DNA from: Fimbriosthenelais zetlandica
Taxonomy: Eukaryota
DNA: 64,000 bases
NCBI GenBank assembly: GCA_977030845.1
Contig: OZ365109.1
Location: 9,858,001 to 9,922,000 of the forward strand
Direction of reading: 5' to 3'
Numbering within the stretch: position 1 is the stretch's first letter; every line of letters begins with the position of its first letter. Made by a program: the position numbers and the translations under genes. Under the pieces are notes generated by a model, which saw only the letters and a program-made list of their open reading frames with translations, was not told the origin of the DNA and ran no database searches. Shown in pieces: positions 2,170 to 59,120 of this stretch.

Positions 2170-2490
2170 GCACATCTACTCAGCCAATCACATCAGAGCT
2201 ACTGGAATCCATTGGGATCGATCTAACCAATCACAAACATTCTTACTAACAAGCTGACCAATGAGAGCGCTCCCGGCCGTCGTCATGGATAGGTAACCAC
2301 GCGTGACGTCACACCAGCCGGCAGGTCCGCCATGACACTTGGGTCAGAGCTGAAGGGGGGAAACTTTTCTTGATTATACAGCTTTAATCACTCTAATCGT
2401 TAGCGACTGTCACGGTTGGCGGCAAGATGAATACCGTCCCGAGGTCACCCAACCATGACGCGTGACCCCGGGGTCAAAGATCCGAGACAG
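2170..2490. promoter_or_regulatory. CpG-rich promoter-like module (triple CCAAT + CRE)
   Basis: CCAAT boxes at ~2184, 2227 and 2258; TGACGTCA at 2304-2311; CpG-rich; C-rich tract immediately to the left (~2000-2160). Confidence 0.6.
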
Positions 2491-4179
2491 AGATTTAGAA
2501 ACAAATGACAAGGTGTAAAAGTTTGCAGGGGATATTATTCTAATAGAATCACTGTTTTCTTTTTAATTACGGCCCGGGTTCTTTATTCTTGTGTCTACCC
2601 CTCGGGGTATTATCTGACACTGGCCTTTTTTCCACGTCATTTGAATAATTTGTTTTGGAAGATATTTTTTGTTGGTGCATATAGTATATGGGAAACGAAA
2701 CGGATCAGTTGTATTCAGATTTGTGCAATTTCCTCCGAAACTATTCATTAAGCAAAGTTACTTTCAAGCCGCAAGTTGCTTCATAACAACTCCCAAATAT
2801 AGATCTACTAGCAGAGATGAAAGCGATCAGACGACAGATCTATTGGCCTTTCAGACAAGAAGAAAAATTGTTATAGATAGTTTGATTAATGGCGGGAAAG
2901 ATGAACGTCAGGATAAGAAAATAGTTCTTAAAGGGCTTCAAACTGACATATTATGGTTGAATAATGGTGTGTCAAACTACTTGTAGGCTACTTCCTATAA
3001 TATAATAATATAGCCTTGGGAATGAATATTATGATAAAATTATAGGGTACCGTACCGGTACAAATATAAAATAATTATGTAATTTTAGGCCTATTACACA
3101 CGTATAATTATTATATGCCTTAGGCCTAGACCTATAATGCAACTAAGAACATAGGCCTACAATACTATTAGGCCTATAAAGCCCCATTTATGAAATTGCA
3201 TGGAGTCAAATTAAAAATAATTAACTTTCATTATCATCCTTCAATATATTAGCCTAATTAAATTGCATGAATGTTAACCAAGTAGCCTAGCTACCGTAGC
3301 CCCTAAAGATGAAATAATATTAAAAACCCTCAAGTATGAAACGCAGATAAACTAGGGGAGTAATTAACCTATTCGTCTAAATGTATTATCCACAATCTGG
3401 ATCGAGCTTGTTTCAAAACGAATGTTAGCCATACACTTAGCATTGCTAATTTCCCTATGAAACGGGCTTCTGGTCCCCAACTGTTGACAATTTCCTTAAT
3501 TGTTCCTTCGATGGGGATTGATGTAATTATTGACCTATATCATAATTCTTCAGACTAACAATCCCTGCTTCCCACAGGGTCAACCCTAGTTACCCTATAA
3601 TGTCTGCCCTCCTCCCCACCCACCACCTCCACTCACCTGTCCCTGTCAAAAGCCTTGTTTCCCATTGTCTATATAATATGCATCATGAGAAACATGTAAA
3701 AGATCCCAGCGAAAGAACAGACAATTGTGCGCCAACAATGTGTCCCTACATGTTGAGTTGGAATAACAAATTGTCCTGAAATAGCTGCAAATAGGAGATT
3801 TGATATAGGCCTAAATAATTCTTGAATAGCTTTTAGATCCAGGTTAGCTCCAATGGGCCTATATCTTTGCAATTTGCCAAGAATTTATTTCTCAAGTAAA
3901 CAATATCACCAGCGAAAACCCAAACCCCCAAAAACACCCCATTAGTTATTAGACGCACCTTAAAGTGCCCCACACTTCCCTCCATAAACAAAATAACCCA
4001 TGACCCTCTTTAACCAAATATACCCCCTTCAAACCCCGAAGACAACCATTAAAAATAAACCCCCATCAAGTACCCCCATTACCCTTAAAATACCCCCTGT
4101 ATAGCCCCCTCCCCCAACAAGTACCCCCAGCCCACCCCCCTCGTTGAGCCTCCCCACTCTCCCACGCCCCCACACCCAG

Positions 4180-4330
4180 CTATGTCACTTTTCACAATTG
4201 TCTCTGTCTCCGTGGTAGCACAATGCCCCTCTTGATTGTTACCTATGACGGGAGCTCTTTGATTTCCCTAGATACACGTCTCACATGTCCCCGTAAAACG
4301 CACCTGTTGCTTAGTAACCACACCCCTCCA
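4180..4330. promoter_or_regulatory. RFX X-box module
   Basis: GTTGCTTAGTAAC at 4306-4318 matches the RFX palindromic X-box; flanked by C-rich tracts. Confidence 0.45.
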
Positions 4331-6639
4331 CACCTCAGGCTTTCTGCTCTTCACCTCTCCCCCCTCACACTCTCTCTGTTACCCTAGTATTGTCTAACTT
4401 CCTTCCCCTTATATATAGCGTATCATGGGAGGGTGGCACTGGAGTTTGGGGTGTGGGTGTGTGTGTGGGGGGGGGGGGGGGGGCACTCAGGAAGAAAGTG
4501 GGTATAGGCCTGCCTTTGCTTTTTACAACCCTAAACTACTCATCACAAAGTGCAAAAATTATGTGACGTCAGCATGTTACCTATACTTGTTGAGTTTGAA
4601 TATAATCCTGAAATACATATATAGATGAAAACTTTCTGACCGGTGTCAAGCAACTACAAATATACTCACTGAGAATGGACCAAGCTTTAGGACCCACTTT
4701 GATTCTGAGTGCCCTCCCACCCACGAGTGTACATTTATATACCCTTCCTATCTATCACACACTCATGCACACCCCGACTCACTCATGCATTATCAACTTT
4801 CTTCTACTTGATCGACTTGATATATTTTCATTGTAGATACTTACCTTTAGGAACCTGACACAGTTGCTTTTCCACTTCATATCATTCTATACCCTTTCTT
4901 CTAATGTGCACTGGTAGGCATATATAAAAACATTCGATGTTTAATAGGCCTAATATCGCCAACAACAATTGCATAAATTGTGTAACAATTGCGTAAGTTC
5001 ATGATTTATATTTCTATAAATTATATTGTGAAATTGGCAAAAAAAAAATCTCAAACAAGTTTCAATTAAAAGATCTGTATCCTGCAATTTTATGGTCGGA
5101 TGAATCTCACAATTATAATATTAAAAATTGAACATCACGTAAAGAAATTCTAGGGAACTTTATTGAAACATTTGATAAGTAATCTCTTGAATATTTTAGA
5201 AAAGGTTTATTGGGGGAAATTATTTAGTCAGGTTATCAGCAAATTCATCAAATGCAAATTTAAAGGTGGTGGGTTGGGGGCTAATGCCATGGTTGATCAA
5301 AATCTGTCGTTAAAGGAGCTCTATTCAGCGCTGAAACACTGATGTAATCTCACTAATTAAAACAACTTGTCAAAAGAAATTCAAAATGCTCCATGAACCT
5401 GCCACGATTTACTGGCGTTCTGAATAGATACCTATCTGCATTCATTCACCCTATACCGCCTTTCACCCCAATAATTTTTAACTACACCCCTTTTCCCATA
5501 TCTTCACCCATCCCCCCCCCGCCATCTTCATTCCATCAACCCCTACCCCCCCCCCCCCCCCACCCATAAACCCAATCCTCTTTTCCCAATTATCCTCCCG
5601 CATTTTGAACCCCTCACTCCTGTCAACCCTTCCCCTCCCTCACCAGACTCTCCCCCCCCCCCCCACAACCCCTTTCCGCACTCCCTCTCCTCTTCCTCCT
5701 TCCCTCCTCCCTCTTTCATCTCCATCCTTACCCCGACCCCCCTCGATCCATCCCAGCCCCTTCTTCCCATCTTCCGCTTCTTCTCCCACCCCATTTACTT
5801 CACCTTCTCCTCCATCTCCACTCCCACCCCCATCCCAAAATCCGTAGCCACCTACACACCCGTCTGATAACTATTACAATGTATTATGAATACCTTGATT
5901 TACCCTTTAGTCATAATACACATAATTGTTGATAAACATCACCTGCCTGTCTCCATTTAGTGTCACCCGCGTGGATACACATCACTGCCCCTCCTTTACG
6001 ATATTGTTTTCCCCTCAAAACCACCAAGTCTGGTCCTTTTATGCGGTTCTTATTTCTTTCACCTCATTTATAAGCAAAACCATAACTATTTAAATTCACC
6101 CTTGGTTGTGCCTGCCCTTTAGTACCCTCATTATCCACTAGAGGGACCTATACTTGATGTATTTTGTATATTGAGACCTGATTGTTGACGCCCATTTAAC
6201 ATTCCCGGTGTTCACTGGACCGTGTCCCCCTAGTGGCAAGGGTAATAACAGAGACCTTATATTAGGCACATTTAGGGTCTCTGGTAATAACCACAACCAT
6301 AGCCCAACCCCCCCCCCCCCCGAATATTCTGCAGTAATATATTTCACAAGTTATCCTAAAAATGAATTAACAGAGAAATAATTGTTTCTAATTTGTTATT
6401 AACGTTTCCAAGTTTGGAATAGAAAAGTTAATATAGGGCCTATTTGGAATAGTTTTATAATTTGTAGATTATTTTAGTGGAATTAAATCTTGTGGAATTA
6501 AATCTATACTAATTTGTCTCTGGCATACCACCATTTCCCTTAGCTCCCACTAACCTCCGACCCCCCCCCCCCCCCCCCCGCACCACCCACCTTAATTGCC
6601 CATTGCCCTCCTTGCCCCCACCCACCTTTAAACAGATCG

Positions 6640-6960
6640 TTCGAGCAACCATAATGGTGAACAATCAGCCCCCTTGTGGTCATATGAAGCACTATTTACA
6701 GGTGTAGCCAATAAGATGGCAGTGTTTGGACATAGGCCTACATCAGCCCCCTCGTGGTTAGTGTTGACACTATTTCCAGGTGTCGCCAATCAGGGGGCTG
6801 TATTTGGGAACCATCAGTTGTTGATGTGTATAATTGTACTATCATAGGCCTAGAACTTCGTCCATTTGTTTGTATAAGTCACTAGCGACGCCTACCAACG
6901 TGACTCGAGTCACCGTTGTTAAAGATGGCGGATGTTTGTTCTCCTCTATTACGTTATTTT
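6640..6960. promoter_or_regulatory. Promoter-like module with duplicated CTCF-like + CCAAT unit and YY1 site
   Basis: ~50-bp unit CAGCCCCCT(T/C)GTGGT...CACTATTT.CAGGTGT.GCCAAT at 6664 and 6742; palindrome TGACTCGAGTCA 6901-6912; AAAGATGGCG 6921-6930. Confidence 0.6.
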
Positions 6961-7530: not shown

Positions 7531-7554
7531 GCCTGAAATCAAAAAGCTGTGTAA

Positions 7555-7808
7555 TGGCCCTTGTCCACGAGGCGACAAAATCCACATTTTTTGTAGTTGA
7601 GCGCCAAAAATGCTGTCGCTGGCTTTTGTAGCTTTATGACAAGACACAAATTATTGATGAACAACATGATTACCAATAGAAAGTCGCTACGTGAGCCTGA
7701 TTTCTCAGCGATAGAATGTGCTTAATTAGGTCGGCGCCAATGTTAGGGTCATCAAAAGTAAATTAGGTCAAGTCGCTGACGATTTTGTCGCCTCGTGGAC
7801 AAGGGCCT
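7555..7808. mobile_element. PIF/Harbinger (Tourist-like) MITE
   Basis: Terminal inverted repeat GGCCCTTGTCCACGAGGCGACAAAATC at 7556 and its reverse complement ending at 7807; TAA on both flanks (7552-7554, 7809-7811). A TAA/TTA target duplication with GGC-starting TIRs is characteristic of Harbinger/Tourist. No ORF. Confidence 0.8.
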
Positions 7809-8094
7809 TAAAACACTTTGAAGCAAAAAACCATGCAAAATCAGTTCTATAATATTTTAATTTTGACTTTTCACACTTTTATTTGTTTCGCTTGATTCTA
7901 CATTTTTAACTATTTTTTTTATACATGTATAGGAATTACTGGATGTGGGGGTGGTGTTGTATGGGGGTTTTTTGGTGGTCACTGTGTGTGTGTGGGAGGG
8001 GGCGGGGGTAGGGTAGTAACGAAGGTTGTTGGAGGGGAGGTGGTGGTGGCGGTGGGGGAGGGGGGGGGGGTGTAGGAGTAGGGTGATGGGTGGA

Positions 8095-8260
8095 TGTACA
8101 TGACACGCATGCGCCCTGGGAGCACTGTTTACATGTAGCGTCATGCTTGACTTAGAGGTCTAATTTCCGGGCGTCCAATGCGCATGCTCTAACGCGCAGG
8201 GTGGGGTGCATTACTCGCTCTAGTCACGACATTGTGGCTGGAGAGTGATCAATTGATGGA
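8095..8260. promoter_or_regulatory. NRF1-type promoter-like module
   Basis: CGCATGCGC 8106-8114, TGCGCATGC ~8179, TTTCCGGG ~8165; G-rich tract at 7940-8090. Confidence 0.5.
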
Positions 8261-9039: not shown

Positions 9040-9370
9040 ATTGTCACGAGACCTCTAATCAGCTCTCGTCACCATGGAAACCTGAAGTAGGCGAGAGCGA
9101 GCCTGGTTGATGGTCACGTGGTGGAAACTCAGGTGCCTGATTGGCTGAGTGATTGATCTGTCGCCGGAAGTTCTGAGACAAGGAAGCGGAAGTCAGGAGA
9201 CAGACGCCGTTGCTGGGTCTCGCGAAACTGCGCAGATTCTCGTTGTGGTAGCGAGTAGGACGAGACTTGAGTGGAGATTAAATAGTGGGCGCGAGATGGC
9301 GATCTAGGCAGCGGGGAGAGTGGTAGCAGGTAGGGGGCGGTGTGGGGCGGTGTGGGGCGGTGCGGGGCGG
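9040..9370 (+). promoter_or_regulatory. Strong housekeeping-type promoter-like module with possible first-exon donor
   Basis: RFX-like GTCACCATGGAAAC 9068-9081; GTCACGTG ~9113; TGATTGGC ~9138; CCGGAAGT 9164-9171; GCGGAAGT 9186; TCTCGCGAAA ~9218; AGATGGCG ~9294; CAG|GTAGGG at 9330 followed by GGGGCGG repeats. Confidence 0.65.
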
Positions 9371-9864
9371 TGGGGGCGGAAACTTGTATACAGTATGAAT
9401 TGTTATGCTAGAATAATACGATGGGAAATATGCACTCTGAAATCTGAAAAAGTACCCCCTTTTCTCAAATTTCGATATTGGGAACGAGCCCTACTACCCA
9501 CTTTAATTCCCTCCATGGCGGGGCGGTGGGGATGTGGTTCGAGATGTGAAACCATCACGCCTGCCACAGAATATATGGGCACTGAATGTGGCCCCCCAAT
9601 AGGTAGATAATGGAGGTAAATTTCCGATCCATGTCCTATCCTCATGAATAATGATTGTAAAAATCTTTAGTAGATTCATATCCCAAAAGGACAATTATTG
9701 GGCTTCGAAAAGGGCACTTAGGGTCCCAAAAGGGCATGCATTGGGTGTGAAAGGGGTACCCACCCCATCACCTCCTCCCCTTCTCCGACCCCTTTCAACC
9801 TCCCACCTTTTAGATCCACCACTTGTGGTGGTCTGGTGGGAGGGGGTGTTGCCATAGCCACATC

Positions 9865-10657: not shown

Positions 10658-10972
10658 AATGCTTTAAGATGTTCTGCTGCCTCTTGCCGGCTTGGGTGTC
10701 TCTGTTTCCTCCTGCAACATGTTTAACATCCTCAAGCTGAGCAAGATGTCTCCAACATGCAATTCATGAGCACCTAGATTTGAGAGAGAATGTTCCCGGA
10801 ATATGGTTTGATTATCTAAGAATTAAAACAGAATGCAGCCCGACTATTAGCACAATGTCGTGCCAGTTGCCTGCATGGAGACATCTTGCTCAGCTTGAGG
10901 ATGTTAAACATGTTGCAGGAGGAAACAGAGACACCCAAGCCGGCAAGAGGCAGCAGAACATCTTAAAGCATT
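10658..10972. repeat. Inverted repeat (~100-bp arms, ~110-bp spacer); MITE/foldback-like
   Basis: 10658-10761 is near-perfectly reverse-complementary to 10872-10972 (AATGCTTTAAGATGTTCTGCTGCC... / ...GGCAGCAGAACATCTTAAAGCATT). Confidence 0.9.
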
Positions 10973-11306: not shown

Positions 11307-12039
11307 TTCAGTTTATACAAGCTAACAACATGATATAAAAGACTTTGTTCTGACCATTTCAGTTGTCGCATTTTGAGATGGTCGCCTCATTGATGATGTC
11401 GATCTTAGTGGTGTTAAACATATTGGTCGTATTATTAAAATTAATGGTCGTTTTAGTGAGGTGGTCTCTAAGTGAGGCGCCACTGTATTGTTGTCGTAAA
11501 GTGGATTAAGAATGAATTGTCTGAACGTTGCCCGCCTGGGCGTGGCTGGGGAACGAGTCAAATATTTCATCAATATCTATTGAGCGGGTAATTGGGGGGC
11601 CGCTAATTACACCTAATTATTCTCCATCTTTTGCCGAGCACAGTGTAAGCCACTCCATTCCTAAAATCTCGGCTCTTTACTCCCAGGTTCTGAAGAAAGA
11701 GAAAGTGGAGGAGAGAAGGTATAAGGGTCTACATATATAGGGCCTGGTGTAGGCCTAGGGTACATAGGCCTAGGGGAGGGGGTCCACAGATGCAGTTCTA
11801 TATGCAGGATTCGATGTGCAGGGATTGGAGACATGCGAAAACATGAATTTAACCCTAGCCATTGTGCATAAATAGGATGCTTAATTTTACAAAATTTTAA
11901 TCGGATAAATGAAGATGCCTTAAGGCCGTCTGTAAAATTTAACGTGGAGTGGAATCTCACGGTCAACAGTATTGAACTTTACTAAACAACTAGATGTATG
12001 ACAGCGTTTAATGCAAATCCATTCACTGACGTGGACTCA

Positions 12040-12360
12040 GTCCTTGAAATTGGACGCCGCCCCCTCGCGGTGTTCATTTTACTAACGTTGTAACGGGTCT
12101 CACTTGGTGTTCTCTTTTCCCCCGACACGTTCATCGTGACTTCCGGTTCAAAGAATCCCGCCGTCTTTGTCTAACGAGGAGGGAAAGAAATCTGATTGGT
12201 TGGCCCCTCACCTCTCGTCAAGTCTCGTGCGTTCCGTGACTTTGAAGCTGTCACGTGATTAGTGGAGGGGGAGGCTGTATATCGGTTAGTTAGACATTGC
12301 CACACCAGGTGTCAGGCCTGAGTGGCGTCTATCTGTCACGTGGTCCAGGGAAGCTGACGG
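12040..12360. promoter_or_regulatory. Promoter-like module (CTCF-like, ETS, CCAAT, E-box)
   Basis: CGCCGCCCCCTCGCGG 12055; ACTTCCGG 12139-12146; TGATTGG ~12193; GTCACGTG ~12250 and ~12334. Confidence 0.6.
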
Positions 12361-13440
12361 TGCATTGTTCTGACAGTCATTTTCAGTCGCATACGACTTT
12401 CATAATTATAAAAATGAGCGTAAAAATTAAGCAGTTTCACTACGCTCTGCGACACCTTAAACTCAAACTCATATTCTACACATTTATAGGCCATGCATAA
12501 AAAAATGTTGGGTTACTTTTGTTTTATATACGTCTATCTTCCAACCGGAAATTTATGGACAAAGGAAATAGATATTCCCATAACGTCTATTTATGAAAAC
12601 ATACAAAATATTGTATTGTACTGTTTCTAAAAAGTAAACAGGAATTTTTGAAAATATAAAAGAATTACAAACGTTTTAAAAGTGGTCACAACAAGCTAAA
12701 TTCAAATATTATGCGGGCCTACTACACGAGCTTTTTCTTGTGATTTTGAAGAAACCAAATTAAAATTAACATTAAAATTATACCATACGCTTATCAACAT
12801 TTTCAATACCGAAAATCATGTACATGTAATTAATACGCCAACAATACATGTATATAATAGGCCTAACTAGAATATTGATGGCATACAGTATTTTAGGTCT
12901 GAATGGAACCGCCTCGCTCGATTTGCTCGTGCATGCAGCATAAGGCAAACAATAAACCGGTTTTTGTGAATATAATACAGTTTTTGTGAGAGTGTTTTCC
13001 TTTTGATATCCATTTTTGATCCCTAAAATATCAAATCGTTATAATCAATAAGATTCTTTCAAATTTGCTGCTTGTTTCACATTTTGCTCGCATTTGATTG
13101 CCAATTATAATGCATACACCATTAATTATATTTTGCCTATTCATCATTTATTGATGCGTTATTGTTATGCATTTTCAATGGAGAATCATATCAATGGAAA
13201 AAAACGATTATGTATTGTTTGGTACACTTTGGCAGATTTGGATGTACCGAGAACAATTATGGACGTCCCCGAACTTAAACAAATAATTTTGATTAGGTCA
13301 GCATTTTTTATCTCATAGCATGTCATAAACCTTTTGCTATGCATTTAATTTTGGCTTAATTAATAATTTCTTTTTAAATGTTCAGAAAATCCTCTTGTTT
13401 CACTCTTGCAGTTTATGAGGTCTCAGATAGCACTTCTTTC

Positions 13441-27814: not shown

Positions 27815-28075
27815 ACCCATCAAAATGGCGGGGAGGGATGCAGTGAGCGCTATTGTTCTTACATCACGTCTTTGTTTATGGGCTGCCATGGCCTGACATC
27901 ACCCATGTAAGCCGGGCTAGGATTGGCTGACTCGCTCCAGGTCACAGATATAAGCTGAGATTGGATTGGCCAGCTGCTCCTGCTAGCCTCCAACCAAACG
28001 CTGACCTCTGAGATGAACTTCCGGTGATGTGTGATTTCCACTGTAGATGGCGCTGCCGCCGGAAACTGTAATGTT
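27815..28075. promoter_or_regulatory. Promoter-like module (YY1, CCAAT, ETS, CTCF-like)
   Basis: AAAATGGCG 27822; GATTGGC 27921 and ~27964; ACTTCCGG 28017; CCACTGTAGATGGCGCTG 28038-28055. Confidence 0.65.
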
Positions 28076-29054
28076 AATCACAGATAGAGAGACAGGGCGT
28101 CCCCACCGCCCCCATAAATATACACTACTGTCCAAAAGTCTTTTAGGCCGCCATCAGATTTGACGTTTATCAACGTTCCAGTATTATCATTGATCAACAA
28201 ATGTTTGGAAATTTGTTTCCAAATTACATGTTTTTAGACTTATAAATGCTCCCCATTACGTTCTTTGATCGAGTGTATATGAAATATTTTATTTTACACT
28301 ATGTTATGGCATTCTTTTAGGTGTTGTTTGAATACATAGGCCTAGATGACATTGTGTAGATCATCAAATCCTTAATATTGTGGAAATTTAGAGATCTAAA
28401 TCATTTGAGATTTTGTTTTCTTTATCATTTACATGTATTTGTTGCACTCTATTTATTTACACTTCATTACAATTTAGACCAACATGACTGAAATATCTTG
28501 TTTTATATAACTTTTTTAATGACATTTTATTTTATTATCAGCAAAAATTTAACACTTCACAATAATATAGGCCTATAATATATGAGTCAGTCACAAACTT
28601 GTATAAAACTGCATTAGTGCGACGGCAGATGTTTCACATACCCTATCTGTACCTATACATGTACCTGTATGTCTCCATTTTGAACTCATATCCAGCGAGA
28701 TAAAAATTAATGTATGTTTGATATCCTCCCTGTTGATATAGGTGTGTCACTGGTACATAACATTTATTGCCTTTTATAGACGTAGTATGTTAATATTATT
28801 TCATGTACTCAAATATTAAAATAACTGGGGCCTATATTCTGTAGCTGATATTAAAATTGTACTGAAGTGCTTCAATTATTATGTAACATTGCTTACCCTT
28901 ATGACATCTTTATGTATTTTATATAAGTTTTTAAGTTACATTTTATTATACATTTAAAGCTGAACTATATGAACTGCGTTTTTACGCACCAAATACGGTG
29001 ACTTAAATCTAGTCACAGATACAGACCCCATAAATTTTGTATCCAAAATATGGA

Positions 29055-35800: not shown

Positions 35801-35954
35801 GCTTATTTGGGGATGTTATATTTAGCCTATAGGTCCCAGCTATATCAACACACATTGTACGAAGGCCCACGATGTTCAGTACCTGTAAAATTTTATACGG
35901 ACACGAGCAGAATAAATATTTATCCTGATTAAATATTTACGTCTACATTAAAGC

Positions 35955-36130
35955 AGGCCTGCTGACTGTTTCAGCCTTCGTCCCGCCGTGACCTGTTATC
36001 AAACAATCAATATTGTACTTAAGATTAATGATCCGCGCATGCGTATTGATTATTAGCCGCGTCCCGCCAGCGTCCGCCCCGCGTCGCGCCCGGACTATTT
36101 CCTGACAGTTTATCATGCGATTACAGCTGT
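35955..36130. promoter_or_regulatory. CpG-dense promoter-like core truncated by the gap
   Basis: GCGCATGCG 36035; very CpG-dense 36056-36093. Confidence 0.5.
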
Positions 36131-36372
36131 NNNNNNNNNNNNNNNNNNNNNNNNNNNNNNNNNNNNNNNNNNNNNNNNNNNNNNNNNNNNNNNNNNNNNN
36201 NNNNNNNNNNNNNNNNNNNNNNNNNNNNNNNNNNNNNNNNNNNNNNNNNNNNNNNNNNNNNNNNNNNNNNNNNNNNNNNNNNNNNNNNNNNNNNNNNNNN
36301 NNNNNNNNNNNNNNNNNNNNNNNNNNNNNNNNNNNNNNNNNNNNNNNNNNNNNNNNNNNNNNNNNNNNNNNN
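36131..36372. other. Assembly gap (242 N)
   Basis: Run of N. Confidence 1.
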
Positions 36373-36560
36373 GGAGGGAAGGGAGAGGGAAAGGGAAAGG
36401 GAAGGGGGAGGGGGGAAGGGGAAGGGAAGGGAAGGGGACAGGGAAAGGGAAGGGGGAGGTTTAGGGAGATGGAGGGAGGAAAGGGGAGGAGGGGGAGGGA
36501 AGGGAAGGCGGGAGGGAAAGGGTAGGGAAGGGAAGATGGGAGGGAAGGAAGGGGGGAATC
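36373..36560. repeat. GGGAA/GGAGG purine-rich low-complexity tract
   Basis: Direct reading; abuts the gap. Confidence 0.9.
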
Positions 36561-39479
36561 ATATGATGGCATTGTCATGGGAGGTGAAAAAAAGAGTGGT
36601 AGTGTAAGGAAGGAAGGGAGGGGAGTGGAAAGGGAATGCATGGGAAAAGGACAGAAAAATAGAAAAAAGCAGGATGGAGAGAAAGAATGGGAAGAGATGT
36701 AGTACGAAGAGTGTAATCAGGAAGTAGAGGCGTGGTTGGGGGCAGAGCGGGTGCCAATCTGGGCTTACTTTGAAACCCCCACAAGGGGCACTTACTCTAG
36801 CCGCGGTCTTCTCGTTCCACCACGAAGCTATACTTTACACTAATAGGGCCTAATAGGTTTTCATTTGCATCTTAATACAGGCTATGATAGAAAATTACAG
36901 TTTCAACCAGTAAACCTAGTCATGTATACATTCATTTATCATCCCTCTGTAAAAGGGATGGGATCTGGCCCTGTGGACGCAAACACTAACAGCAGGTCTT
37001 TACTTACAAGCCTCTCCCCCTGGATGACCACACTTTCTATTGGGGCTAAATTAAGCTATGAATCTCTACTGCATGGAGCTACACTCAGCTACAGTGTGCC
37101 CCTTCCCCACCCTGATGGCCAGCCCATGTTCAACATGCTCGAGGCGACGCCATACCTGCGCGCGCACCATTCATCATGTGACTAGCAAGCTGGTCATGTG
37201 ACCTGGTGCTTGTACGATGTAGTGTAATGAGGCTAGGTGTCGCTGCTTAAATAGACCGCCCGGCTGTGTCAATATAAATTCACCCTCATCCCGGATCTTA
37301 CTAGGGTGTTGCTCCACTGGGGTATTTTTTCCCCTTTTTTTCATAATACATTTTTCTTCAGGATTTTGTTTCAACATAAAGACACATACGGTCTCGGGCT
37401 TAGGCCTAGGCCCGGTTTTTATCCCGCCTCCTGACCAGTATGTAAACCATATGTTAAACTAAAAGAATATATCCACATCATTATTTAAAAAACTATTTAC
37501 AACAATACTTTTGCATTTTCTGCAACCTCATATATTTGTCATATTGGACTATTTTCCGATACCAGCTATGTTAATTAGGTCACCGGAAGTGGCCCTTTCT
37601 AGCCTCCTTTTTGTAGGACCGCAGAAGAAATTTACAGGTCTTGTTTCTTTTGCCTCTTTAGGATCATCAACCTCTAAAATTATTTATCGATATTGATCAT
37701 TCTCGATATATCATGTCAAATCATGGATCTTGGCATTTTACCTGTTTTTCACTGGCACGATTTCTCGACCTTCTAATTGTAGGCTACATGTATCCAAAGT
37801 AATAAATCATGAGCTACTTGGCTCCTAAATTATACCATCCCTTCACAATTAAGTCGTGTGTAGAAAAACAAATATTGGTCCATTTGAGATACTGTATAAT
37901 TAAAAGGTTTCGGGTTTTCAAAATCCAATGCAGAATTTGACATTTTCTATTTTGTTTTTTCAGGCGTTTTTTCTTTCTCATGCATGTCCATGTCCATGTC
38001 TTCGAAGAAGAGGTCAAATTTTCCATTGTCCTTCTCAGCCCAGCCATGTCTCCCACTGTCTATGGTGAGAGGCATGTAAAAGAACCATTGCTGCCGTTTG
38101 AGAAGAGTAGTTGATTGTATGCTGACAGCGTGTTTCCTTCTCGTCTTGAGATAGCCAAAATAATTCATCCATCCATCTTTGAAAAAGAATGGCCTCTTAT
38201 TTCCCCTGCTAATTTCTCGGGGATTTTAAACACCATCTAGTAGCTAGAAGAAGTTAAGTGAAGGAGACTGCTACGTGACCTTCATACGACCTTGACCCCG
38301 TTAACTTGCCTTAAGTGTAATTGCTCCCCTGCCGGTTAGTGGATACAGACGGTAGCGCCTCCACGCGGGGCCTGGTGGAATTAGCTCTCAGCTATTATAC
38401 TAAATGTACCACCTTGTGAGCAGGGCTCAATAGCTCGGTCACTGATCCCTTTTATGGGATGCCTTCTTCTTTATCTCCTCTTCCTTTCCCTCCATGGTCT
38501 TCCATTCTTTAGTACCCTCGGATCACTTTTTTCCACAAACATGTTTGAAATGGTAACATATCTATATCTGCTTCATTGCCTCCATTCCCTTTTAATATTC
38601 TTTTACTTGCACTTCAATTTTGCTTCATTTCTACCTCTTTCTCTCTCCCTTTCTTCTGGCCCCAAAAGATGGTCATTTTTGACTTAGTGGTATTAAGAAT
38701 ATATAAATTAGAAGTCACTTAGTGAGATGGTAACTTCAACGACTTGGTCGTTAAGCCTCCCCATCTTACAGCTCTTCCCCTTCCCCATTGCCTCTTCCCT
38801 TCCTTTTTTGTCCTCACCCATTCCCCATCCACACCCATCCATTCTCCATCCTCCCCTCTAATCTCCCTATCCCCAACCCTCCCATCTACACCACCCTTCA
38901 CATCCTCTTCTTCCTTTTTCCACCATTAGCTTCCCCTCCTTTTATAACCCTTCCTATTCTCCATCCCTCCCCTGTCCCCTCCTTTCATTCTCCCTCCTCC
39001 CTTCTAAATCTCCCTATATCCCCACCCTCCCTGGCCAGGTCCAGGTGTGGCCAAACTGGCGAACGGAGTTACAGGGCTGTATACGTATAGAAAAGACAGC
39101 CCCATCCCCCCCTCCACCCCCTCTCATTTCACCACCCACCTATCCCCACCCCGCTCTTTCCAGCCGATCAAGCCCGCCTGTCTGACACCCCCTCCTTGCC
39201 CTAATTCCCTCCCCCTGTACCAGCAACAGCCTCACGCTAACACGCCACCACCCTCTGTACTTAAGAGCTGCTCCCTCTCTCTATCCACATGCCAGAGTGC
39301 GTTATACAAGTGACTCACTCATTGCCATGCGTGGCTACTTGCGGCTAGTAGTGGTAGTAGCTTTCACTCCCAGTACCACACATGTAACCCCCACCCACCC
39401 ACATGCACACCCCCGACCCCCGTCACACACCCACCCCCCACCACCACCCCCCGAAGAGAGCAGTTATTTGGTTGGAGCT

Positions 39480-41139: not shown

Positions 41140-41231
41140 ATGTGATTGGACTAAACTCAGCGTTCATCTGGATATAAAAAGACCCCAAAATGGCTTTTGG
41201 ATTGTTTCATGGCAGTGCAGGAAAGGTAAGC
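41140..41231 (+). promoter_or_regulatory. CCAAT-TATA promoter with candidate micro first exon
   Basis: GATTGG 41144-41149; TATAAAA 41173-41179; ATG at 41209 (and 41190); AAAG|GTAAGC donor at 41226. Confidence 0.55.
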
Positions 41232-42659
41232 CTAATTACTGCTTTTCCTATCAATTAGTATTAAAATACCATTATTGTTTAAGTGTTTATCATATAATTG
41301 TTATATATGATTCCACAATGCAAAGAATGGAATCCCATTAATGAAGAATCATTGTGACATTGGTTTTGTTAAATTTAAAATATTTTCCCATTTCTCTGAA
41401 AACAAAGAAAGGGACATCTCTGATAAGAATCTGACTATGCAACAATAGTATCTTTTTAAATCGCCTTTTATCTGTTTGTTTACATCTTCTTCCTATCTAA
41501 CCACCTTAGAAACTTCTATTAAAAGAAACACTTTAAAGGAAGTTGGGGGAGGGGGGGGGGGGTACGTTCCTTAAAGGTAACACTTGTAACGCACTCTCGC
41601 TATATGGGAGTGCCGCAGGGATCTCATGTAAGTTCTTCTAGCCTGATTTTCTCAGATAGTTCAATGGTCTTAGGTTAATTGATGGGTGGTTGATGTGCTG
41701 GCACATTTATGTGAACACTTGCTTTGACACTCGTCAGACAGTTTAACCTGGTGTAATTACATTAATGTACTACATCATTGCAATCCCAGGTATGTTAAAT
41801 GTATGCTATAATTTTCCATCGTGAAATTTTTGAACCAAGTTTATTGGACTTATTAGCTGATTCTTTTAGTCCATCGTTGGACCATTGAACACAGTTAAAT
41901 CGACCATGTTATTCTTCAATGGAAAAACTTGGTGAACTATTGAACTATTGAACATTGACATTGTTGGTCTTGTTTGGTTAGTCACAAGTTGGACAAATCT
42001 CATTAAACTTCATGTATTAGTTTAAATGAATTTCGATCTCCTTCTTCCTCTCCCTGCATTCTCTCTCTCTCCAATCACAGAGTATAGACCTACACTCACA
42101 GTCACCCTCTCACTCTCTATCTCTCCTTCTCCATGTGCCTCCGCTCTCCCTCCCTCTCCCATCCCCCTCTCTCCTCTCTCCCTCTCTGTCCTCTTAACTC
42201 AATTGATTGGCTCTCGTAGGACAAGAGGACTCACTCTCGGGTGGAACTCTCTAGGGAGGAGGCTCGAATCCCACATGTCACCCACTTAACGCCGCCATCT
42301 TGTTCCCTCTTTGTTCTGATTGGTCCATTCACACACGCTAACAACCTATCATTCCCTTTTTCCTTTTCCTGAAACTTTGTTTTTGATTCTCGTTATGAGG
42401 CAGTGATGCCAAGATGTTCTAATTATTCTCAAATTTCTCTTAATAATCCAAATAATGTCATAAAGTTCTTGACTAGAACTATGAATGTTAATTAATTCTG
42501 AAAGGATGCAGAATTGATTTCATTTCAAATTGAGAAATGTTGACTACTTCAAACGGTATTTATCCATGATCAACAAGATGTGGTAAATACGATACAATAT
42601 GACTTTTACTCAGGAGTTAATTATTAGAGGAACATTTGCGGTAGGAAATACTGGGCCTA

Positions 42660-43050
42660 CCCCTGCTTTTAAAAGGCCACGTTAGGGACGCTCTAAAATG
42701 CTGTCATTACAGGAAGTAGTTCTCTGGGGGAAGTAGATGACGCTGCAGTAGCAGCGTCCATGACAATGAATATTTGATACCAGCATTAGAGCATGGATTG
42801 CTAGCTGGGCATTCTGATTGGTTGAAGGAGGTCACGTGACCAAGGTCAGACCAAGGGTCATGGTAATTACATGGCATATCTCATGATTTAGGCTGCGCAT
42901 GCGCAAAACCTCATAGCTGTGATGTAGTGCAGAGAGATAACATGGTTTTATGATCGCAACATGCGAGAAAATATGATCTTATGATCTTACACGCCCATCA
43001 CAAATCATGCACGACAGGGCCGTGGACGGGGAGGGGCCGGCAGCTAAAAT
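42660..43050. promoter_or_regulatory. Promoter-like module (ETS, CCAAT, USF E-box, nuclear-receptor half-sites, NRF1)
   Basis: CAGGAAGT 42710; TGATTGG ~42815; GTCACGTGAC 42831-42840; AGGTCA 42843; TGCGCATGCGCA 42894-42905. Confidence 0.65.
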
Positions 43051-45308: not shown

Positions 45309-45513
45309 TGTTGTACAAGGAACCTCGCCAATGGCGAGGGTTGGCGAGGGCAACCTCGCCGAGCGTTTGCTTTGTTCAAGTACTGTTTTCTTGAAAAACT
45401 TCCTTGTTGCATTGTCCAAGCTCTGTTTTCTCAAAAATATTGTTTGTACAATACAACCGCTCGGCGAGGGTACCCTCCCTCACCCTCGCCATTGACGATT
45501 TTCTTGTACAACA
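45309..45513. mobile_element. Small TIR element (MITE-like), family unassigned
   Basis: Imperfect ~55-bp inverted termini TGTTGTACAAG...CCTCGCCGAGCG / CGCTCGGCGAGG...CTTGTACAACA; internal palindrome CCTCGCCAATGGCGAGG; no target-site duplication seen. Confidence 0.65.
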
Positions 45514-47759: not shown

Positions 47760-48050
47760 GGCCAGTCACCACTCGTGGACGAGCTGAGTAGTTTTGATGA
47801 GGATTGTTTCTCTTGCTGTTTCCTCTCTCACTGAAATTACCACTCAACAGGCGATAGGGGACGCTCGGCGCACACAATGTAGCTTTTTAATGATGGCGGC
47901 CATGTTGGACTTAGTCACGTGTCTCGAGGGTCCTCCAACAAACACACTAATAATGCCGCCTGGTGGCCGTCGTGTTCCCATAGCAACGCGTGCGGGCTCA
48001 GCCGCGAATTAAGGCAAGTGAGAAGTGCACACTCGTAGTGACAGCGCTGG
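47760..48050. promoter_or_regulatory. Promoter-like module (YY1, E-box, CTCF-like, RFX)
   Basis: ATGGCGGCCAT 47893; GTCACGTG 47914; TGCCGCCTGGTGGCC 47954-47968; GTTCCCATAGCAAC 47974-47987; G-rich right flank. Confidence 0.65.
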
Positions 48051-48640: not shown

Positions 48641-49234
48641 TTTTTTCCAATCTGGTGTTATCGCTTCTCTTGGCTGCCTATCTTTACTTTGTAGCAACGT
48701 TACCCTGTGGTAGAAAAACTTGGTGGGAACACAATTCAGACAGATCATTTATTGGAAACCATGGACACCAAAAGTCTTATCTATTGCTCCAAATTCTTTT
48801 CTATTGGTTATATTCATGAAATTTTGAGATTAGGCCTATATTAAAAATTAGATCCCTTTTTCATCTCTCGCCCTGGATCATTTGTTAGAAACCATGAATG
48901 ATTTACTCCGAGATTATTTTTCATTAGTTCCATTTATCAATGACAATTTTAAGATTATCTTTTGATTTATATTAAACTCAAAAGATCTCTCTAAACACTT
49001 GACTTGACATTATCAACATTTTTCCTTTCCTCTCTCCATCAATCTGCCTGACATCTTCATTATACTTTCCTTCCCTTTACTTTTCTCCTCCGTTTAGATA
49101 GTTCCTTCCCTTCCCACCTTGTCATTTTCTCACCTCCCCCTCCCACCTCCTCCAGCCTCTGTCTCTCTCTCACTTACTCTCCCATCAGGAGTAGTTCACT
49201 AGGAGACACAAAAATAGGGCCAATTCCCACCGAT

Positions 49235-49600
49235 TCATTCCCATTGTGCGCGTTTCTTGCGCCTGCCTAAATAAGCCCTGGGCAATCTGTGTCGGGAGTG
49301 TAGCCGTCGGCCCGCCCACTGCGGTAATTCTGCGCGTCGCCCATGGAAAATGATGGCGAATTGTTCTGGCGTTTGCGGAGAGTGGAAAAAGTGCGCGGGA
49401 TGACTACCGAGTATTTATGGCTGATTGACACGGGAATCGCGCCCACAAATTAGCCCCCATTCTCACGCGGCCCCCGAGATGCTGCTCACCGCCACCTCGC
49501 GACAATCCGAGAACTCCAACAAGGCCCAGGCCCTGTTACTACTGCTGCCAGCGGCGGAAATACTGCCGCTCGAAAACGTAGTCCCCAGAGTCCTAATGCC
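49235..49600. promoter_or_regulatory. CpG-island-like promoter module
   Basis: High CpG; ATGGCG 49353; TGATTGACA 49422 (PBX/PREP-like); G-rich right flank with GAG|GTAAGT at 49715. Confidence 0.55.
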
Positions 49601-50787
49601 CCAGGGCTGGTAGGTATTAGTACGCCATCGTCCTTGACACACGAGGCATCCTTGAACATGGCAAGGAAGTGGGTGATGGAAGGGGGGATGGTGGTGGGTG
49701 AGAGGGAAGGGGAGGTAAGTGGGAGGGGGAAGAAGGCTTAGAAGGGATCAGAGGAGAGACAGGAATCCGTTTGCATGTAGACCGAGAGAGTGAGATGAGT
49801 CGTGGAGGGCACATGAGTCAATGGAATGGGGTCACGAGGGAGCGCTCCATTAACAATGGGCATGGGTATGGATGAGTGCTTAAATTAATGTAAACACTGA
49901 CATGCAAAAAAGCAAAAAAGCTTTAAATCATTAATGATAATGCAGGCATCACTCTATTACAGTCCATGCTATAGTCAACATGGTTTGGATACTATGTTCA
50001 GCAATTGATCAGCAATTGTTTGTCTTTATTAATCTAGAGTAACCAGGAGGAAGAAAGAAAATGTCAGATAAAATACAGAATTTTTCTTAGCTGTATATCA
50101 GGCCGAACCTCTTCTTCTCGTGCTTCCTGGTGCCATAATATAAAACATATTAAAATTTGATAATTAATGTCGAACGGGCCAACGCCATTCTTTTGCTAAT
50201 ATCCTACAGCTTGGAAAACATCATGCATTATTTTACAGTGATTGTTACATGAGTAAACTGCATGCATAACAGACGACAAGGAGCCGAAAATTATTTGTAC
50301 ATGTATACCTAATATTAAATAAAATATTAGTCATAATATATCATACCTTTACAATTGATTGCAAAGGAAGTTGCAACAATTCTGTTAGTTTCATGAAAGA
50401 TCACTTTCGTTAGTCCAGAAAGAATGTAATCATTATATTGGAGTTTCAATGTAGTTTCCATGTAGTGAACTCCCTTTGAGATGACTTTCAAATGACATTT
50501 ATAAAAAAGCCAGAATTAGACATAGGCCGGAATCATCGTGAAATGCCAGAGGTCTGAACAAGTCAAGTTGTTGTCAGATATGCCCTGACATTTGCCTTGC
50601 TGTCATTTCATTCAAACAATTATTCTATTGAAAAGTTCTCTGGGCTGAAAGGAAACTTGTATCTGGAATACATGTACAGTATATTACCTGAGCTATTAGG
50701 ACCATGGCAGAGTGGAACTCTCCGCCGAGGAGGTTGTAAGTATCACACTTCCGGTCTGAGAGTTACCAATAGGTTCTTTTTAGATAC

Positions 50788-51633
50788 ACAAGGGCCTTCG
50801 GCCACTAAGCAAATAGAAAATAATTTGTTTAAATTTAAGTGTAAAAGACTAAATTTAAAAATAAAATCGATCAGCCCCTGTAGGCAAACTAAGAAAATAC
50901 AAAGTAGCCTAGGCCTACATTGATTACATGCTAACACTAACAGCAGTTTGAATTTTCCCTATAGGCCTAGATCATATAAATGCCTGTAATATTATAATTA
51001 TATTAAATTTAGGGCCTATCGGTGACACTGAAATCGCAATAGCCCATGGTTTACCGGTATATTACGGATTTATCTTACGGAAATACTAATTATTATTAAT
51101 TTATATTGTCAGTGACATAGTGTATCTGATTGAAGACCAAAATTTGGCAGGGCCTAATATTTAGCCTCGGTGTTATTGTCATGTTTTAATATTTGTTTGC
51201 GAATTCCCTGACATGCACTGACATGTATTAAATGAAATATTAAACAAAATATATATCTGAAGTCACTGACAATATAAATCAATAATAATTAGTATTTCTG
51301 TAATATAAATCCGTAATATAAACCATATTGCGATTTCACTGTCACCGATAGGCCCTAAACTTAAGATAATTATAATATTACAGGCATTTATATGATCTAG
51401 GCCTATAGGGAAAATTCAAACTGCTGTTAGTCTTAGCATTTAATCAATGTAGGCCTAGGCTACTTTATATTTTCTTAGTTTGCCTACAGGGGCTGGTCGA
51501 TTTTATTTTTAAATTTAGTCTTTTACACTTAAATTTTAAATTTAGTCTTTTACACTTAAATTTTAAATTTAGTCTTTTACACTTAAATTTAAACAAATTA
51601 GTTTCTATTTGCTTAGTGGCCGAAGGCCCTTGT
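50788..51633. mobile_element. Long foldback element (~330/370-bp inverted arms, ~145-bp spacer)
   Basis: 50788-51116 is reverse-complementary to 51262-51633 at high identity; the right arm carries three tandem copies of a 27-bp unit present once in the left arm. Confidence 0.85.
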
Positions 51634-51739
51634 TTATTTTTAAAAATCCTCCGCCCCCCCCCCCCCCCCCCCCCCCCCCCCCGCCATCTATAAGGTGGTC
51701 CCACCATTTGGAATCAGTCTACAGTTGGCTTTCCATAGG

Positions 51740-51855: not shown

Positions 51856-51974
51856 ATAGCCTCGCCCTTTTCGGCAATTTTCTCGTTTACTTTTTATAGA
51901 ATAGGGAGTAGGGTAAGTAATCAATTTGTACAGAATGAACATTCGCCCGCTCAAGTACAAAAAAACGTGTATAT

Positions 51975-52215
51975 AAACAAACTCTCGCCGGGCGATAATA
52001 GAGGTTCATGGGGGTTCTTTCACTTCCGGCCGAATCGCCCATCATAGCCCCATGTGTCTTAAATAAACATCGGGTCGGCTGGCCGCTGTTGAATGAGAGA
52101 AGCCCGGTGATTGGCCGATTTAACAGTTGTGGGCGGATTCAATCCAATCCGGGCCAATCCGGGCCGTCGTTACAAATCAGTCATTCAACGGGCTTCTCTC
52201 AACGGGCTTCTCGAA
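51975..52215. promoter_or_regulatory. Promoter-like module (ETS, CCAAT cluster, GC box)
   Basis: ACTTCCGG 52022; GATTGGC ~52109; GGGCGG ~52131; CCAATCCGGG twice in 52144-52163. Confidence 0.55.
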
Positions 52216-55200: not shown

Positions 55201-55226
55201 TATTTGGACCTGATAGATATATAATT

Positions 55227-55315
55227 AAATGGTTTTTCCAATAACATTTTCAATCAATTATAGCGCAATTCATCATTACTATAATTGATTGAAAATGTTA
55301 TTGGAAAAACCATTT
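55227..55315. repeat. Perfect 37-bp inverted repeat with 15-nt loop
   Basis: 55227-55263 is the exact reverse complement of 55279-55315. Confidence 0.9.
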
Positions 55316-56074
55316 ATTATTATATTATAGGCCTAATCTATCTAGAGCTCTATCGACGGGGTAATTTTGGAGGTTGCAACCTCGACCTCCCTTAGAAAAA
55401 AAAAAAATAAGAGAAAAAAGGAGAGCAAATTTACAAATTTAAGGAAAGAATAGATAAGGAAAGGATGGCTTGTAAAATTGTAAAATATGCCCACCTCCTC
55501 TGATTTTGGGACTGTAAAACATTTATAATTGCAGATCAAACCAATCCTAGACATGCTAGATAAAAATGCACCCTTTCATGTTTTTGCCCCGCCAGCTTAT
55601 TTGACAGAGGAATGCGTGGTGAATTTCACACTTTTATAAATGTGTAAGAGACACTTTTTAGAGGAATTCTTTTACTACATGCAATGGCGATTTAATTAAT
55701 TTTGTCTCCATTTGTCACAGCCCCAACAAACGCCTGGACCAATGTCCAATTTCCATATGCTACACCCTGGATTTATGTGAGTAGTGTAGACAAATTTACC
55801 ACTGTCCCGGGTTCAATGTATTCTACTCTAAATTCTCATTACTTTGATGCATTTTTACAGGTATCTCAAGACGTTAAAGTTTTCTATTCAAATAGTAGGA
55901 AATACATTCTGGCAGTGTGAGACATGATTGGCCTTTGATGACCAAGTTGACAGCACGGGGCTATACTCATATCCCCTTATTACATGCTGCAGTCCCGTTG
56001 ATATGCTTGTATTTAGGCCATTTAGTACAAGCCAAGAGCAGGGGTACATTGAATATAATAAAATTAGTAGCCTG

Positions 56075-57869: not shown

Positions 57870-58200
57870 AGTCACTAGGTGCGCCACTAGCCACAAGCTG
57901 CTAATCAATTGCCACACGTCGCTGCAACTGTCGCAAACTTCATTACTTCTGCCTGACTTCCCTCATCCTTTCCCACTACTAAAACTTCAAATCATCGCCT
58001 TTGATGTCTCCAAGCAAGCGTCGAAAGCCCTCGCTCCGTTTCACCGCTCCATTATATTTACATCCGTCGATATGGCCGCCATTAAGGCAAGATCAACGTC
58101 AGTCACTTCCGACAAATTTGAGCGTATCAACGGGTAGTAATTGGATATCCGGGCAGGGGGATTTTTCACTCTTTGTGCAGTGACCGGAAGGTCTATATTC
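57870..58200. promoter_or_regulatory. Promoter-like module (YY1, ETS)
   Basis: ATGGCCGCCAT 58072; GTCACTTCCG 58102; ACCGGAAG ~58183; purine-rich right flank. Confidence 0.5.
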
Positions 58201-58879
58201 TAGACTGATATTGCAGGAGTAGGAGGTTGAAAAAGCTGCATTATCAATGAGGGGGGAATGGCTGAGGAGGAGATGACAGGAGGGAAGTATAGAACAACCA
58301 GCGAGGCCAAGACTTGATATCACACTTCATTAAATAAGAGGCATGACTGGGAAAGGAATCATAAAAAAAATATTAAAAAAAAGGTAATTCAGATAGAGGA
58401 GCAAAGACAGGCCTAACTCGAGAAACATAGTCACAGTGGGATATGCATCAGGCGATTTAAATGTCTTTCACCTTAGGCAGTAGGCTGGTAGTTTGGTTCC
58501 CGCCTACTGTCTAGGTGGCGCTAGGGGCGCCCAGTAGCCTCTCAGTTAGGTCTTGGGACAAGGCTAGTAGGCTGGCTTTTAAATGCCTCTCACCTTATGC
58601 AGTGTATAAATGGCTTAAGCATGCATGCTTAACTCTTGTTATAAAATGAGACTTTGGTTGACACCTTTATTCTGTAGGCCTAACAGTCCCTGTTGCCAGT
58701 TATTTTGCATTATGCAAAGTTTGCTATTACCTCACTTCCACAAAGTATCTGCTGTATAATTTCATGGACCAGCTTGCCATTGTTCAATCTCTGGTATAAT
58801 ATACCTTAAGCAAACAGAATGGAGCTGCGTCTTTGGGCTTTTTCACAAATCTTCATGCAGCAGCTAAAGGTAAATGTAA

Positions 58880-59120
58880 ACAAAGTGCGTGCCGCCATAT
58901 TGACGAACAGGTATCTCCCCCTATCAGCTTTTGCGGGCGATCAGCAAAGTCTACAAACGCCATTTTAAATGGACGACCATGAATCAAGTGCAAATTGTTT
59001 AGTCAATCCGTGGCTGACTACACATTTGCTGCGGGCTAGCTATTTGCTGGCCCACTTACTGCGGGCCTGCTATTTACCAAGTACATAGACGCCATGTTTG
59101 TAGAAACGCTCGGCCAATCT
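58880..59120. promoter_or_regulatory. YY1-rich promoter-like module
   Basis: GCCGCCATATT ~58891; CGCCATTTT 58958; CGCCATGTT 59090; GGCCAAT ~59112. Confidence 0.5.

Follow-up and report, generated by a model that had tools for sequence, protein, structure and literature searches.

Among the described arrangements of promoter-like DNA, the closest to the one reported here are orphan CpG islands or unannotated CpG-island promoters, which are rich in factor sites, lie away from known genes in CpG-depleted DNA, and are retained where bound factors exclude methylation (PMC8286816). In vertebrates, orphan islands are often seen apart from annotated starts and can be developmental enhancers; where invertebrates have mosaic methylation, it is mostly gene bodies or transcription units that make up the methylated, CpG-poor DNA, islands are kept unmethylated by their factor sites and not by CpG richness alone, and in an invertebrate whose genome is methylated, unmethylated promoters are reported to carry NRF1 and YY1 sites (PMC8286816). 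We analysed 64,000 nucleotides of the Fimbriosthenelais zetlandica genome (Eukaryota; NCBI GenBank assembly GCA_977030845.1, contig OZ365109.1, positions 9,858,001 to 9,922,000 of the forward strand), hereafter called the window, along which short CpG-rich modules carry the factor sites typical of housekeeping promoters. The window shares with orphan islands the site-rich CpG islands in CpG-depleted DNA and, if its methylation state is as the sequence suggests, their retention under bound factors. Whereas orphan islands have been described as scattered single elements, however, the window holds about 15 composite modules (at least two motif classes within 300 bp) in 30 kb of an invertebrate genome, with no coding sequence found. 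Orphan CpG islands are the nearest known category, from which the window differs in density and in its uniform housekeeping vocabulary.

Vesper bat Helitrons preferentially carry and amplify promoters along with 5' UTRs (untranslated regions) and first exons, in copies that have a common terminal 30 bp (PMC4224331, which also cites Pack-MULE capture in rice). The likeness to the window would be that promoter, 5' UTR, and first-exon fragments of many unrelated genes come to stand side by side, removed from those genes. Their cargo lies inside elements with common 30-bp ends and in many copies, whereas the window shows no common ends, no hairpin-CTRR termini, no terminal inverted repeats (TIRs), and no decayed copies.

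Banks of alternative first exons, such as those of the clustered protocadherins, UGT1A, CYP19A1, and NR3C1, are rows of promoters, each with a short first exon, that use common downstream exons. Their promoters are related or tissue-specific and face in one direction, whereas the modules of the window are unrelated, of housekeeping type, and of mixed orientation, with no downstream gene in view. In the type I PIWI-interacting RNA (21U-RNA) clusters of Caenorhabditis elegans, large gene-free stretches are filled with autonomous mini-promoters, each making one non-coding RNA. The 21U units have one common upstream motif and lie a few hundred bp apart, whereas the modules have differing mixes of general sites and a spacing of 1-3 kb; no common extended motif, and no single conserved upstream motif at a fixed distance, was found among them. 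Finally, divergent CpG-island promoters reportedly combine GC skew with R-loop formation, as Ginno et al. are said to have described in 2012. The window resembles these in the change of skew sign across an island, with a G-rich outward-reading strand on both sides, but the effect is modest and local (about 300 bp), and G-quadruplex motifs have no orientation bias.

The window has a GC content of 0.42 and a CpG observed/expected ratio (o/e) of 0.53, and all counts of motifs, open reading frames (ORFs), and repeats given below refer to its whole 64 kb unless stated. The ETS word CCGGAAGT/ACTTCCGG occurs 15 times against 1.19 expected, a count reached in 0 of 100 shuffles, and the cyclic AMP response element (CRE) TGACGTCA occurs six times against 0.37 expected, again reached by no shuffle. 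The NRF1 word GCGCATGCGC is found eight times with at most one mismatch (0.24 expected), the NRF1 word GCATGCGC 12 times, the YY1 word AANATGGCG 10 times, and RFX X-box-like sites nine times (3.2 expected). When all CpG-containing 8-mers were ranked without prior choice, the top places went to ACTTCCGG, CTTCCGGT, GCATGCGC, the GGGGCGG type, GTGACGTC, GATGGCGG/AGATGGCG, and GTCACGTG, in other words to ETS, NRF1, Sp1, ATF/CRE, YY1, and USF words. Because whole-window shuffles ignore the clustering of CpGs, we added a local null of dinucleotide shuffles inside 100-bp and 200-bp blocks. With the 100-bp blocks, the counts were 16 versus 1.2 for ETS, 12 versus 0.8 for NRF1, 10 versus 1.2 for YY1, 9 versus 1.3 for CRE, and 8 versus 0.6 for USF, an excess that remains 7- to 15-fold over local shuffles, and 20 versus 8.9 for NF-Y. 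At least two motif classes come together in 19 clusters, against 0.6 expected (at most 3-4 in any shuffle), and at least three in six clusters, against 0.0 in the local shuffles. The motif excess is more than a by-product of CpG clustering: the sites are real, and they are clustered.

A previous reading of this DNA, made from the letters alone (the sequence-only reading), had listed many of these sites, and its list holds up well. All 15 ETS and all six CRE positions are exact, the NRF1 cores are correct within 1-2 nt, and the YY1-type sites reported at about 10 places compare with 10 copies of AANATGGCG; of the factors it named, ETS, NRF1, YY1, NF-Y, CRE, and USF stand, whereas ZNF143 is weak, with one match per pattern. 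CTCF-like sites, which we also considered as a module feature, were rejected because their enrichment is not significant (4 versus 1.45 expected; 6 of 100 shuffles reach 4).

Composite modules account for 19 of the 37 CpG peaks in the window. They are 100-450 bp long and spaced 1-3 kb apart, and 15 of the 19 fall between 2.1 and 32.8 kb, about 15 in 30 kb or one per 2 kb, which makes the array uneven. The dense array of the sequence-only reading is thus real, although its figure of more than 30 modules is too high, since only 19 are composite and at least two of the 37 peaks (7620 and 45372) sit in small inverted-repeat elements without promoter motifs. As in CpG-island promoters, the CpG o/e of the modules lies around 1 (0.6-1.55, against 0.2-0.5 in the background), and general-factor sites are clustered in them beyond chance. 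The modules are as follows, with the strand given where one was assigned.

Module 1, 2162-2486: three CCAAT (NF-Y) boxes and a full CRE (TGACGTCA at 2304); CpG o/e 0.94.
Module 2, 7979-8210: two mirror-oriented NRF1 cores (8107, 8180) and a GC box; adjoins a G-rich tract.
Module 3, 9093-9551, plus strand: USF E-box, inverted CCAAT box, three ETS sites (exact at 9164), and GC boxes; 29 CpG, o/e 1.0.
Module 4, 12007-12367: ETS (12139), CCAAT box, two USF E-boxes, and a CRE half-site; CpG o/e 0.95.
Module 5, 15373-15488: ETS (15393), perfect NRF1 palindrome (15434), and an E-box.
Module 6, 15730-15794: ETS (15750) and a USF E-box.
Module 7, 16964-17170: CRE-like sites, several ETS sites (exact at 17111), and an NRF1 core (17140).
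Module 8, 18340-18779: ETS (18350), CCAAT box, NRF1 core (18544), and a GC box.
Module 9, 19226-19466: two CCAAT boxes, ETS (19303), an ETS/CRE composite, and a full minus-strand YY1 site (19385).
Module 10, 20405-20492: ETS (20425) and an inverted CCAAT box, at the edge of the CpG island 20001-20500 (29 CpG, o/e 1.09).
Module 11, 23941-24100: minus-strand YY1 (23961), ETS (24004), three CRE-type sites (24042-24060), and a plus-strand TATA box at 24090; CpG o/e 1.55.
Module 12, 25490-25573: CRE, USF E-box, and CRE; CpG o/e 1.32.
Module 13, 27820-28191: YY1-type site (27822), inverted CCAAT boxes, ETS (28017), and a GC box.
Module 14, 30292-30388: ETS (30312), perfect NRF1 palindrome (30326), G12 run, and a second ETS site (30358).
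Module 15, 32616-32779: CCAAT and ATTGG boxes; a GC box and an octamer (ATTTGCAT) adjoin directly at 32740-32765.
Module 16, 42184-42347, minus strand: full minus-strand YY1 site (42291) between two inverted CCAAT boxes.
Module 17, 42718-42927: ETS-like site, inverted CCAAT box, USF E-box, and a perfect NRF1 palindrome (42895).
Module 18, 52002-52161: ETS (52022), inverted CCAAT box, and GC boxes.
Module 19, 60175-60330: weak CRE, ETS, and GC-box cluster, beyond the span of the sequence-only reading.

With module 19, the pattern reaches the end of the window. The layout of module 11 reads as that of a possible divergent promoter, and the pairing of GC box and octamer in module 15 is familiar from histone H2B and small nuclear RNA enhancers. 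Module 3 has a donor-like CAG/GTAGGG at about 9328, and a short ATG frame past its sites stops after three codons. Outside the modules, a 78-bp unit is repeated 1.8 times at 6664-6807, with a CCAAT box in each copy and a YY1-type site following at 6922; this looks like a local duplication by which a promoter element was doubled.

When the 15 ETS sites are aligned on their core, nothing but the high-affinity consensus (A)CCGGAAGT is common to them, and the flanks are uninformative. A self-BLAST of the window found no similarity among modules, the only repeats being microsatellites and one foldback element, in agreement with the earlier statement that the modules are not copies of one another. 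The intact word CCGGAAGT is present 15 times against two copies of its CpG-deamination product CTGGAAGT and three of CCAGAAGT; the other one-base variants occur 0-7 times each, all below the intact count, and for the CRE, NRF1, and YY1 words the intact forms likewise outnumber the variants. Intact sites prevail and lie between unrelated flanks, which makes them independent, maintained sites and not repeat copies. Neither do they form a graveyard of old copies, because many decayed versions would then be expected and these are not seen. In CpG-depleted DNA, such a surplus of intact words over deamination variants means that the sites are, by all appearances, shielded from methylation-driven decay or under selection. 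The CpG contrast between islands (o/e 0.8-1.5) and spacers (0.2-0.5), taken with the published observations on mosaic methylation and on factor sites as the guardians of islands (PMC8286816), suggests that the spacers are methylated in the germ line, and perhaps transcribed, and that the islands are occupied by factors and free of methylation.

No coding exon was detected around these sites. The Pfam search covered 546 stop-to-stop ORFs of at least 45 amino acids (aa): the 150 ORFs of at least 75 aa gave only a low-complexity match to Atrophin-1, and the 396 of 45-74 aa gave four matches with E of 0.0045-0.0084, which is chance level for this number of queries. No 240-bp segment rose above the shuffled level of codon periodicity. 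A tRNA search of the window found none, and an Rfam search found no family at the gathering score and, at a permissive threshold, only chance-level matches on an AT-rich hairpin. As far as the Pfam search and the period-3 test reach, therefore, the earlier statement that no recognisable coding sequence lies between the modules is correct. The gene body expected downstream of a CpG-island promoter is not seen, although a non-coding transcript may still be made. Pyrimidine/purine tracts with long open frames were considered as coding sequence and rejected, because they show no period-3 signal, contain unstable C/G homopolymers, and have as their only Pfam match the low-complexity one to Atrophin-1.

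Some features of the DNA around the islands hint at transcription. Across the 37 CpG peaks, GC skew turns from negative to positive (mean right-minus-left difference 0.152 against a null of 0.002, standard deviation (sd) 0.053, p 0.0015), with 26 of the 37 peaks positive, and for the 19 composite modules the difference is 0.19 within 200 bp (p 0.017). A GC-skew flip of this kind is the asymmetry of divergent CpG-island promoters. Within 250 bp of the islands, strong splice donors (GGTRAGT) point outward in seven cases and inward in one (null 2.4), a result that is only suggestive because several of the donors belong to the GTGAGTGAG microsatellite at 26470-26507. The skew flip and the few outward donors thus point weakly to divergent transcription.

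The modules are best read, on the present sequence, as promoter islands of the CpG-island type that are native to this gene-free stretch and maintained in it. Each island would be an independent cluster of sites of the ETS/GABP, NRF1, YY1, CREB/ATF, NF-Y, USF, Sp1, and RFX families, and the factors bound there would exclude germ-line DNA methylation, so that island CpGs and sites would survive while CpGs were lost from the intervening DNA. We infer that the islands are unmethylated, that they initiate transcription, and that their products are non-coding: they would fire RNA polymerase II, often in both directions, and yield short or unstable transcripts, long non-coding RNAs, or small-RNA precursors. 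A cluster of autonomous non-coding units would then make up the stretch, which would be neither a row of protein genes nor transposon cargo. We hold this reading, a native cluster of unmethylated CpG-island-type promoters that drive non-coding or far-spliced transcripts as autonomous non-coding units, tentatively, as a serious possibility that still falls somewhat short of probable. Individually promoted non-coding units had been one of four options in the sequence-only reading, and they fit the maintained sites, the CpG-rich islands, the weak divergent skew, and the few outward donors; alternative first exons, another of its options, also fit this evidence.

Several points weigh against promoter islands of this kind. 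The skew flip around the composite modules fades past 300 bp and has faded by 400-600 bp, the donor excess is inflated by the GTGAGTGAG microsatellite and marginal without it, and the depletion of poly(A) signals in the outward direction is not significant. The 69 G-quadruplex motifs of the window are neither enriched nor oriented around the modules, and were rejected as a module feature for that reason. The coding tests would overlook very short or lineage-specific exons. Moreover, we know of no described case of some 20 housekeeping-type promoters in 30 kb without genes, which makes the prior low.

A bolder reading would be a promoter field, that is, about 20 independent, selectively maintained housekeeping-type promoters in about 30 kb without genes. 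These could form an array of autonomous non-coding units, such as precursors of germ-line small RNAs that each have a general promoter of their own, or alternatively ETS/NRF1/YY1-class factors and polymerase could find a reservoir or sink in them. To our knowledge, neither arrangement has been described in animals, and we consider the bolder reading rather unlikely.

The foremost alternative is that the window serves one gene, or a few, beyond its ends as a bank of alternative first exons, most of them non-coding and probably read on the minus strand, with each short first exon spliced to common downstream exons. This would account for the lack of coding exons in the window and for a pattern that extends to both its ends. 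It would also suit the asymmetry of donor-like GTRAGT words (38 on the minus strand versus 19 on the plus strand), with a minus-strand donor 50-320 bp to the left of eight or nine islands and a plus-strand donor to the right of three, as well as the orientation of the YY1 sites (eight minus versus two plus) and the overall excess of C over G on the plus strand. These strand biases are non-significant, however (for YY1, one-sided p about 0.055); the ETS sites are of mixed orientation, six plus and nine minus; module 11 has its TATA box on the plus strand and module 3 reads as plus-oriented; and no common acceptor or downstream gene is visible in the window. Known first-exon banks, moreover, have tissue-specific promoters and not a uniform housekeeping vocabulary. 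On balance such a bank seems unlikely, without being far-fetched.

The first-exon option had also been offered in the form of enhancers, which we rate separately. The modules would then be orphan CpG islands acting as enhancers, tethering elements, or boundary elements for distant genes. Vertebrate orphan islands provide the precedent (PMC8286816), and the weakness of the evidence for productive transcription in the window would be natural under this explanation. Nevertheless, the vocabulary of ETS, NRF1, YY1, NF-Y, CRE, and USF sites, the TATA box at 24090, and the skew flip are features of core promoters, and the CTCF-like sites do not differ significantly from expectation. We judge enhancer-type islands to be improbable.

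It is equally improbable, in our view, that the window is an archive of promoter and 5'-end fragments copied from many host genes, whether by a transposon (Helitron-like or Pack-TIR-like) or by break-repair insertion of small open-chromatin fragments. The idea has its attractions: the modules are 100-450 bp long and mutually unrelated, each resembles the core of a different housekeeping promoter, the region accepts insertions, as its young small inverted-repeat elements show, and bat Helitrons offer a precedent (PMC4224331). The structures that capture should leave behind are nevertheless missing. No 14-mer occurs three or more times outside the foldback at 50771-51650, and the recurrent termini of Helitrons are thus not seen in the window, although single copies of many different families would escape this test. 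Helitron 3' ends, scanned as GC-rich hairpins with perfect stems of at least 7 bp followed by CTRRT, number zero on either strand against 0.17 in shuffles. Five inverted-repeat elements were found, none of them around a composite module; a Pack-TIR element would frame its captured fragment with TIRs and a target-site duplication. The 546 ORFs contain no remnant of a transposase, helicase, or reverse transcriptase, and that 64 kb should be free of transposase and reverse-transcriptase remnants is a notable finding by itself. Frames opened by the ATGs adjoining the sites stop within a few codons, with no captured coding first exon evident, and decayed motif variants are at background level, whereas staggered capture followed by methylation should have left many. 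Indirect searches for parent copies returned nothing, namely exact-product look-ups with two ORFs of the window, the homology search with the ORF across module 5, and an exact 30-mer scan of metagenome contigs. The capture option of the sequence-only reading is therefore without structural support, be it from common termini, TIRs around modules, Helitron ends, transposase remnants, or CpG-decayed ghost motifs.

Further features of the window are as follows, again with the strand where one was assigned.

22200-22420: CpG island with a CRE (22287) fused to an ETS core and two CCAAT-type boxes upstream.
35940-36130: CpG-rich island with an NRF1-like core (36035), abutting the assembly gap on its left.
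36131-36372: assembly gap of 242 N, whose right flank opens directly in an (AGGGA)n purine tract (36373-36553).
37563-37700: isolated ETS site (37583) and a TATCGATA palindrome (37685).
47860-48000: CpG island with a YY1-type ATGGCGGC, an E-box-like site, and an RFX X-box-like site (47974).
49200-49620, plus strand: CpG island with 27 CpG per 500 bp, containing an ATG-started 43-codon frame (49479-49609).

Each module might instead serve an ordinary small gene that was missed, one specific to the lineage whose exons are very short or whose ORF is small, but we think this quite improbable. Open frames are in slight surplus over local shuffles (604 versus 552, sd 16, at 45 aa or more; 156 versus 124, sd 10, at 75 aa or more). 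The 43-codon frame at 49479-49609 ends at a good donor, GTAGGT, and is a possible first exon. At 41170, a TATA box precedes an ATG at 41190, from which a 12-codon frame (41190-41225) runs to a GTAAGC donor at 41226; a tissue-specific gene that has nothing to do with the CpG-rich modules may have its first exon in this segment, 41170-41227. Set against these signs, none of the 546 ORFs has a credible Pfam match, no 240-bp segment has codon periodicity, the longest non-repetitive ORFs resemble random translation, and the surplus of open frames lies mostly in stop-poor pyrimidine/purine tracts. The 43-codon candidate, checked as part of the ORF 49425-49610, has no Pfam match, and the overlapping 95-aa ORF at 49454-49738, in another frame, gave a single, low-complexity match with HMMER. 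For the ORF across module 5, no relative came up in a homology search.

The main finding does not depend on the assembly gap, the single run of N in the window, because the unbroken 36 kb to its left already carry 15 of the 19 composite modules, and of the 15 exact ETS sites 12 lie there as well. Sequence common to both flanks of the gap was sought by self-BLAST, and none was found. A dispersed 70-bp repeat, 82% identical, has one copy on each side of the gap (34255-34325 and 38040-38107) and is probably a piece of an interspersed element. That the window is an artefact, either a chimeric mosaic of unrelated pieces as the sequence-only reading had also considered or a wrong join at the gap, is very improbable: the gap does coincide with a drop in modules (15 composite modules to the left, four to the right), but it is the only one in 64 kb, it adjoins an (AGGGA)n tract, which is an ordinary cause of read dropout, and the palindromes TAGGCCTA and TACATGTA, with 38 and 21 copies, are distributed evenly between the modules and on both sides of it.

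These palindromes and the other repeats of the window are observations in their own right. The TAGGCCTA palindrome, with 1.1 copies expected, extends from 3086 to 60660, and TACATGTA, with 1.3 expected, from 788 to 63847; both are scattered in unrelated contexts, and a literature search on the TAGGCCTA palindrome found nothing relevant. The inverted repeat at 10658-10972 is perfect, with 97-nt arms (100% complementary) and a 121-nt loop, and is apparently a very young hairpin element or miniature inverted-repeat transposable element. The 880-bp foldback at 50771-51650 has nested arms that are 91-96% complementary, and its right arm contains a 27-bp unit in three perfect tandem copies; on the left the element borders directly on an exact ETS site (50747), and on the right on a C29 run. 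Further small inverted-repeat elements lie at 7548-7815, 45320-45503, and 55217-55325, of which the first two are CpG-rich without promoter motifs. Homopolymers of at least nine G or C number 29 against eight runs of A or T, although the DNA is 58% A+T (examples are C29 at 51654-51682, C19 at 6561-6579, and G18 at 26598-26615), and 67 C-rich, G-rich, or purine/pyrimidine tracts make up about 15% of the window. At 14190-14240, CCCTAA and TTAGGG units stand head-to-head in a short interstitial stretch that resembles telomeric DNA.

Housekeeping promoter sites normally mark one gene each. If about 20 intact promoters do stand here without genes, selection or protection from methylation would act on the promoters themselves. 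Should the modules prove to be copies of gene 5' ends, the window would be a promoter archive, the first in this lineage, from which regulation could be rewired. If the islands fire, they would represent a new layout of non-coding transcription in an invertebrate, and would bear on how CpG islands are kept up outside the vertebrates.

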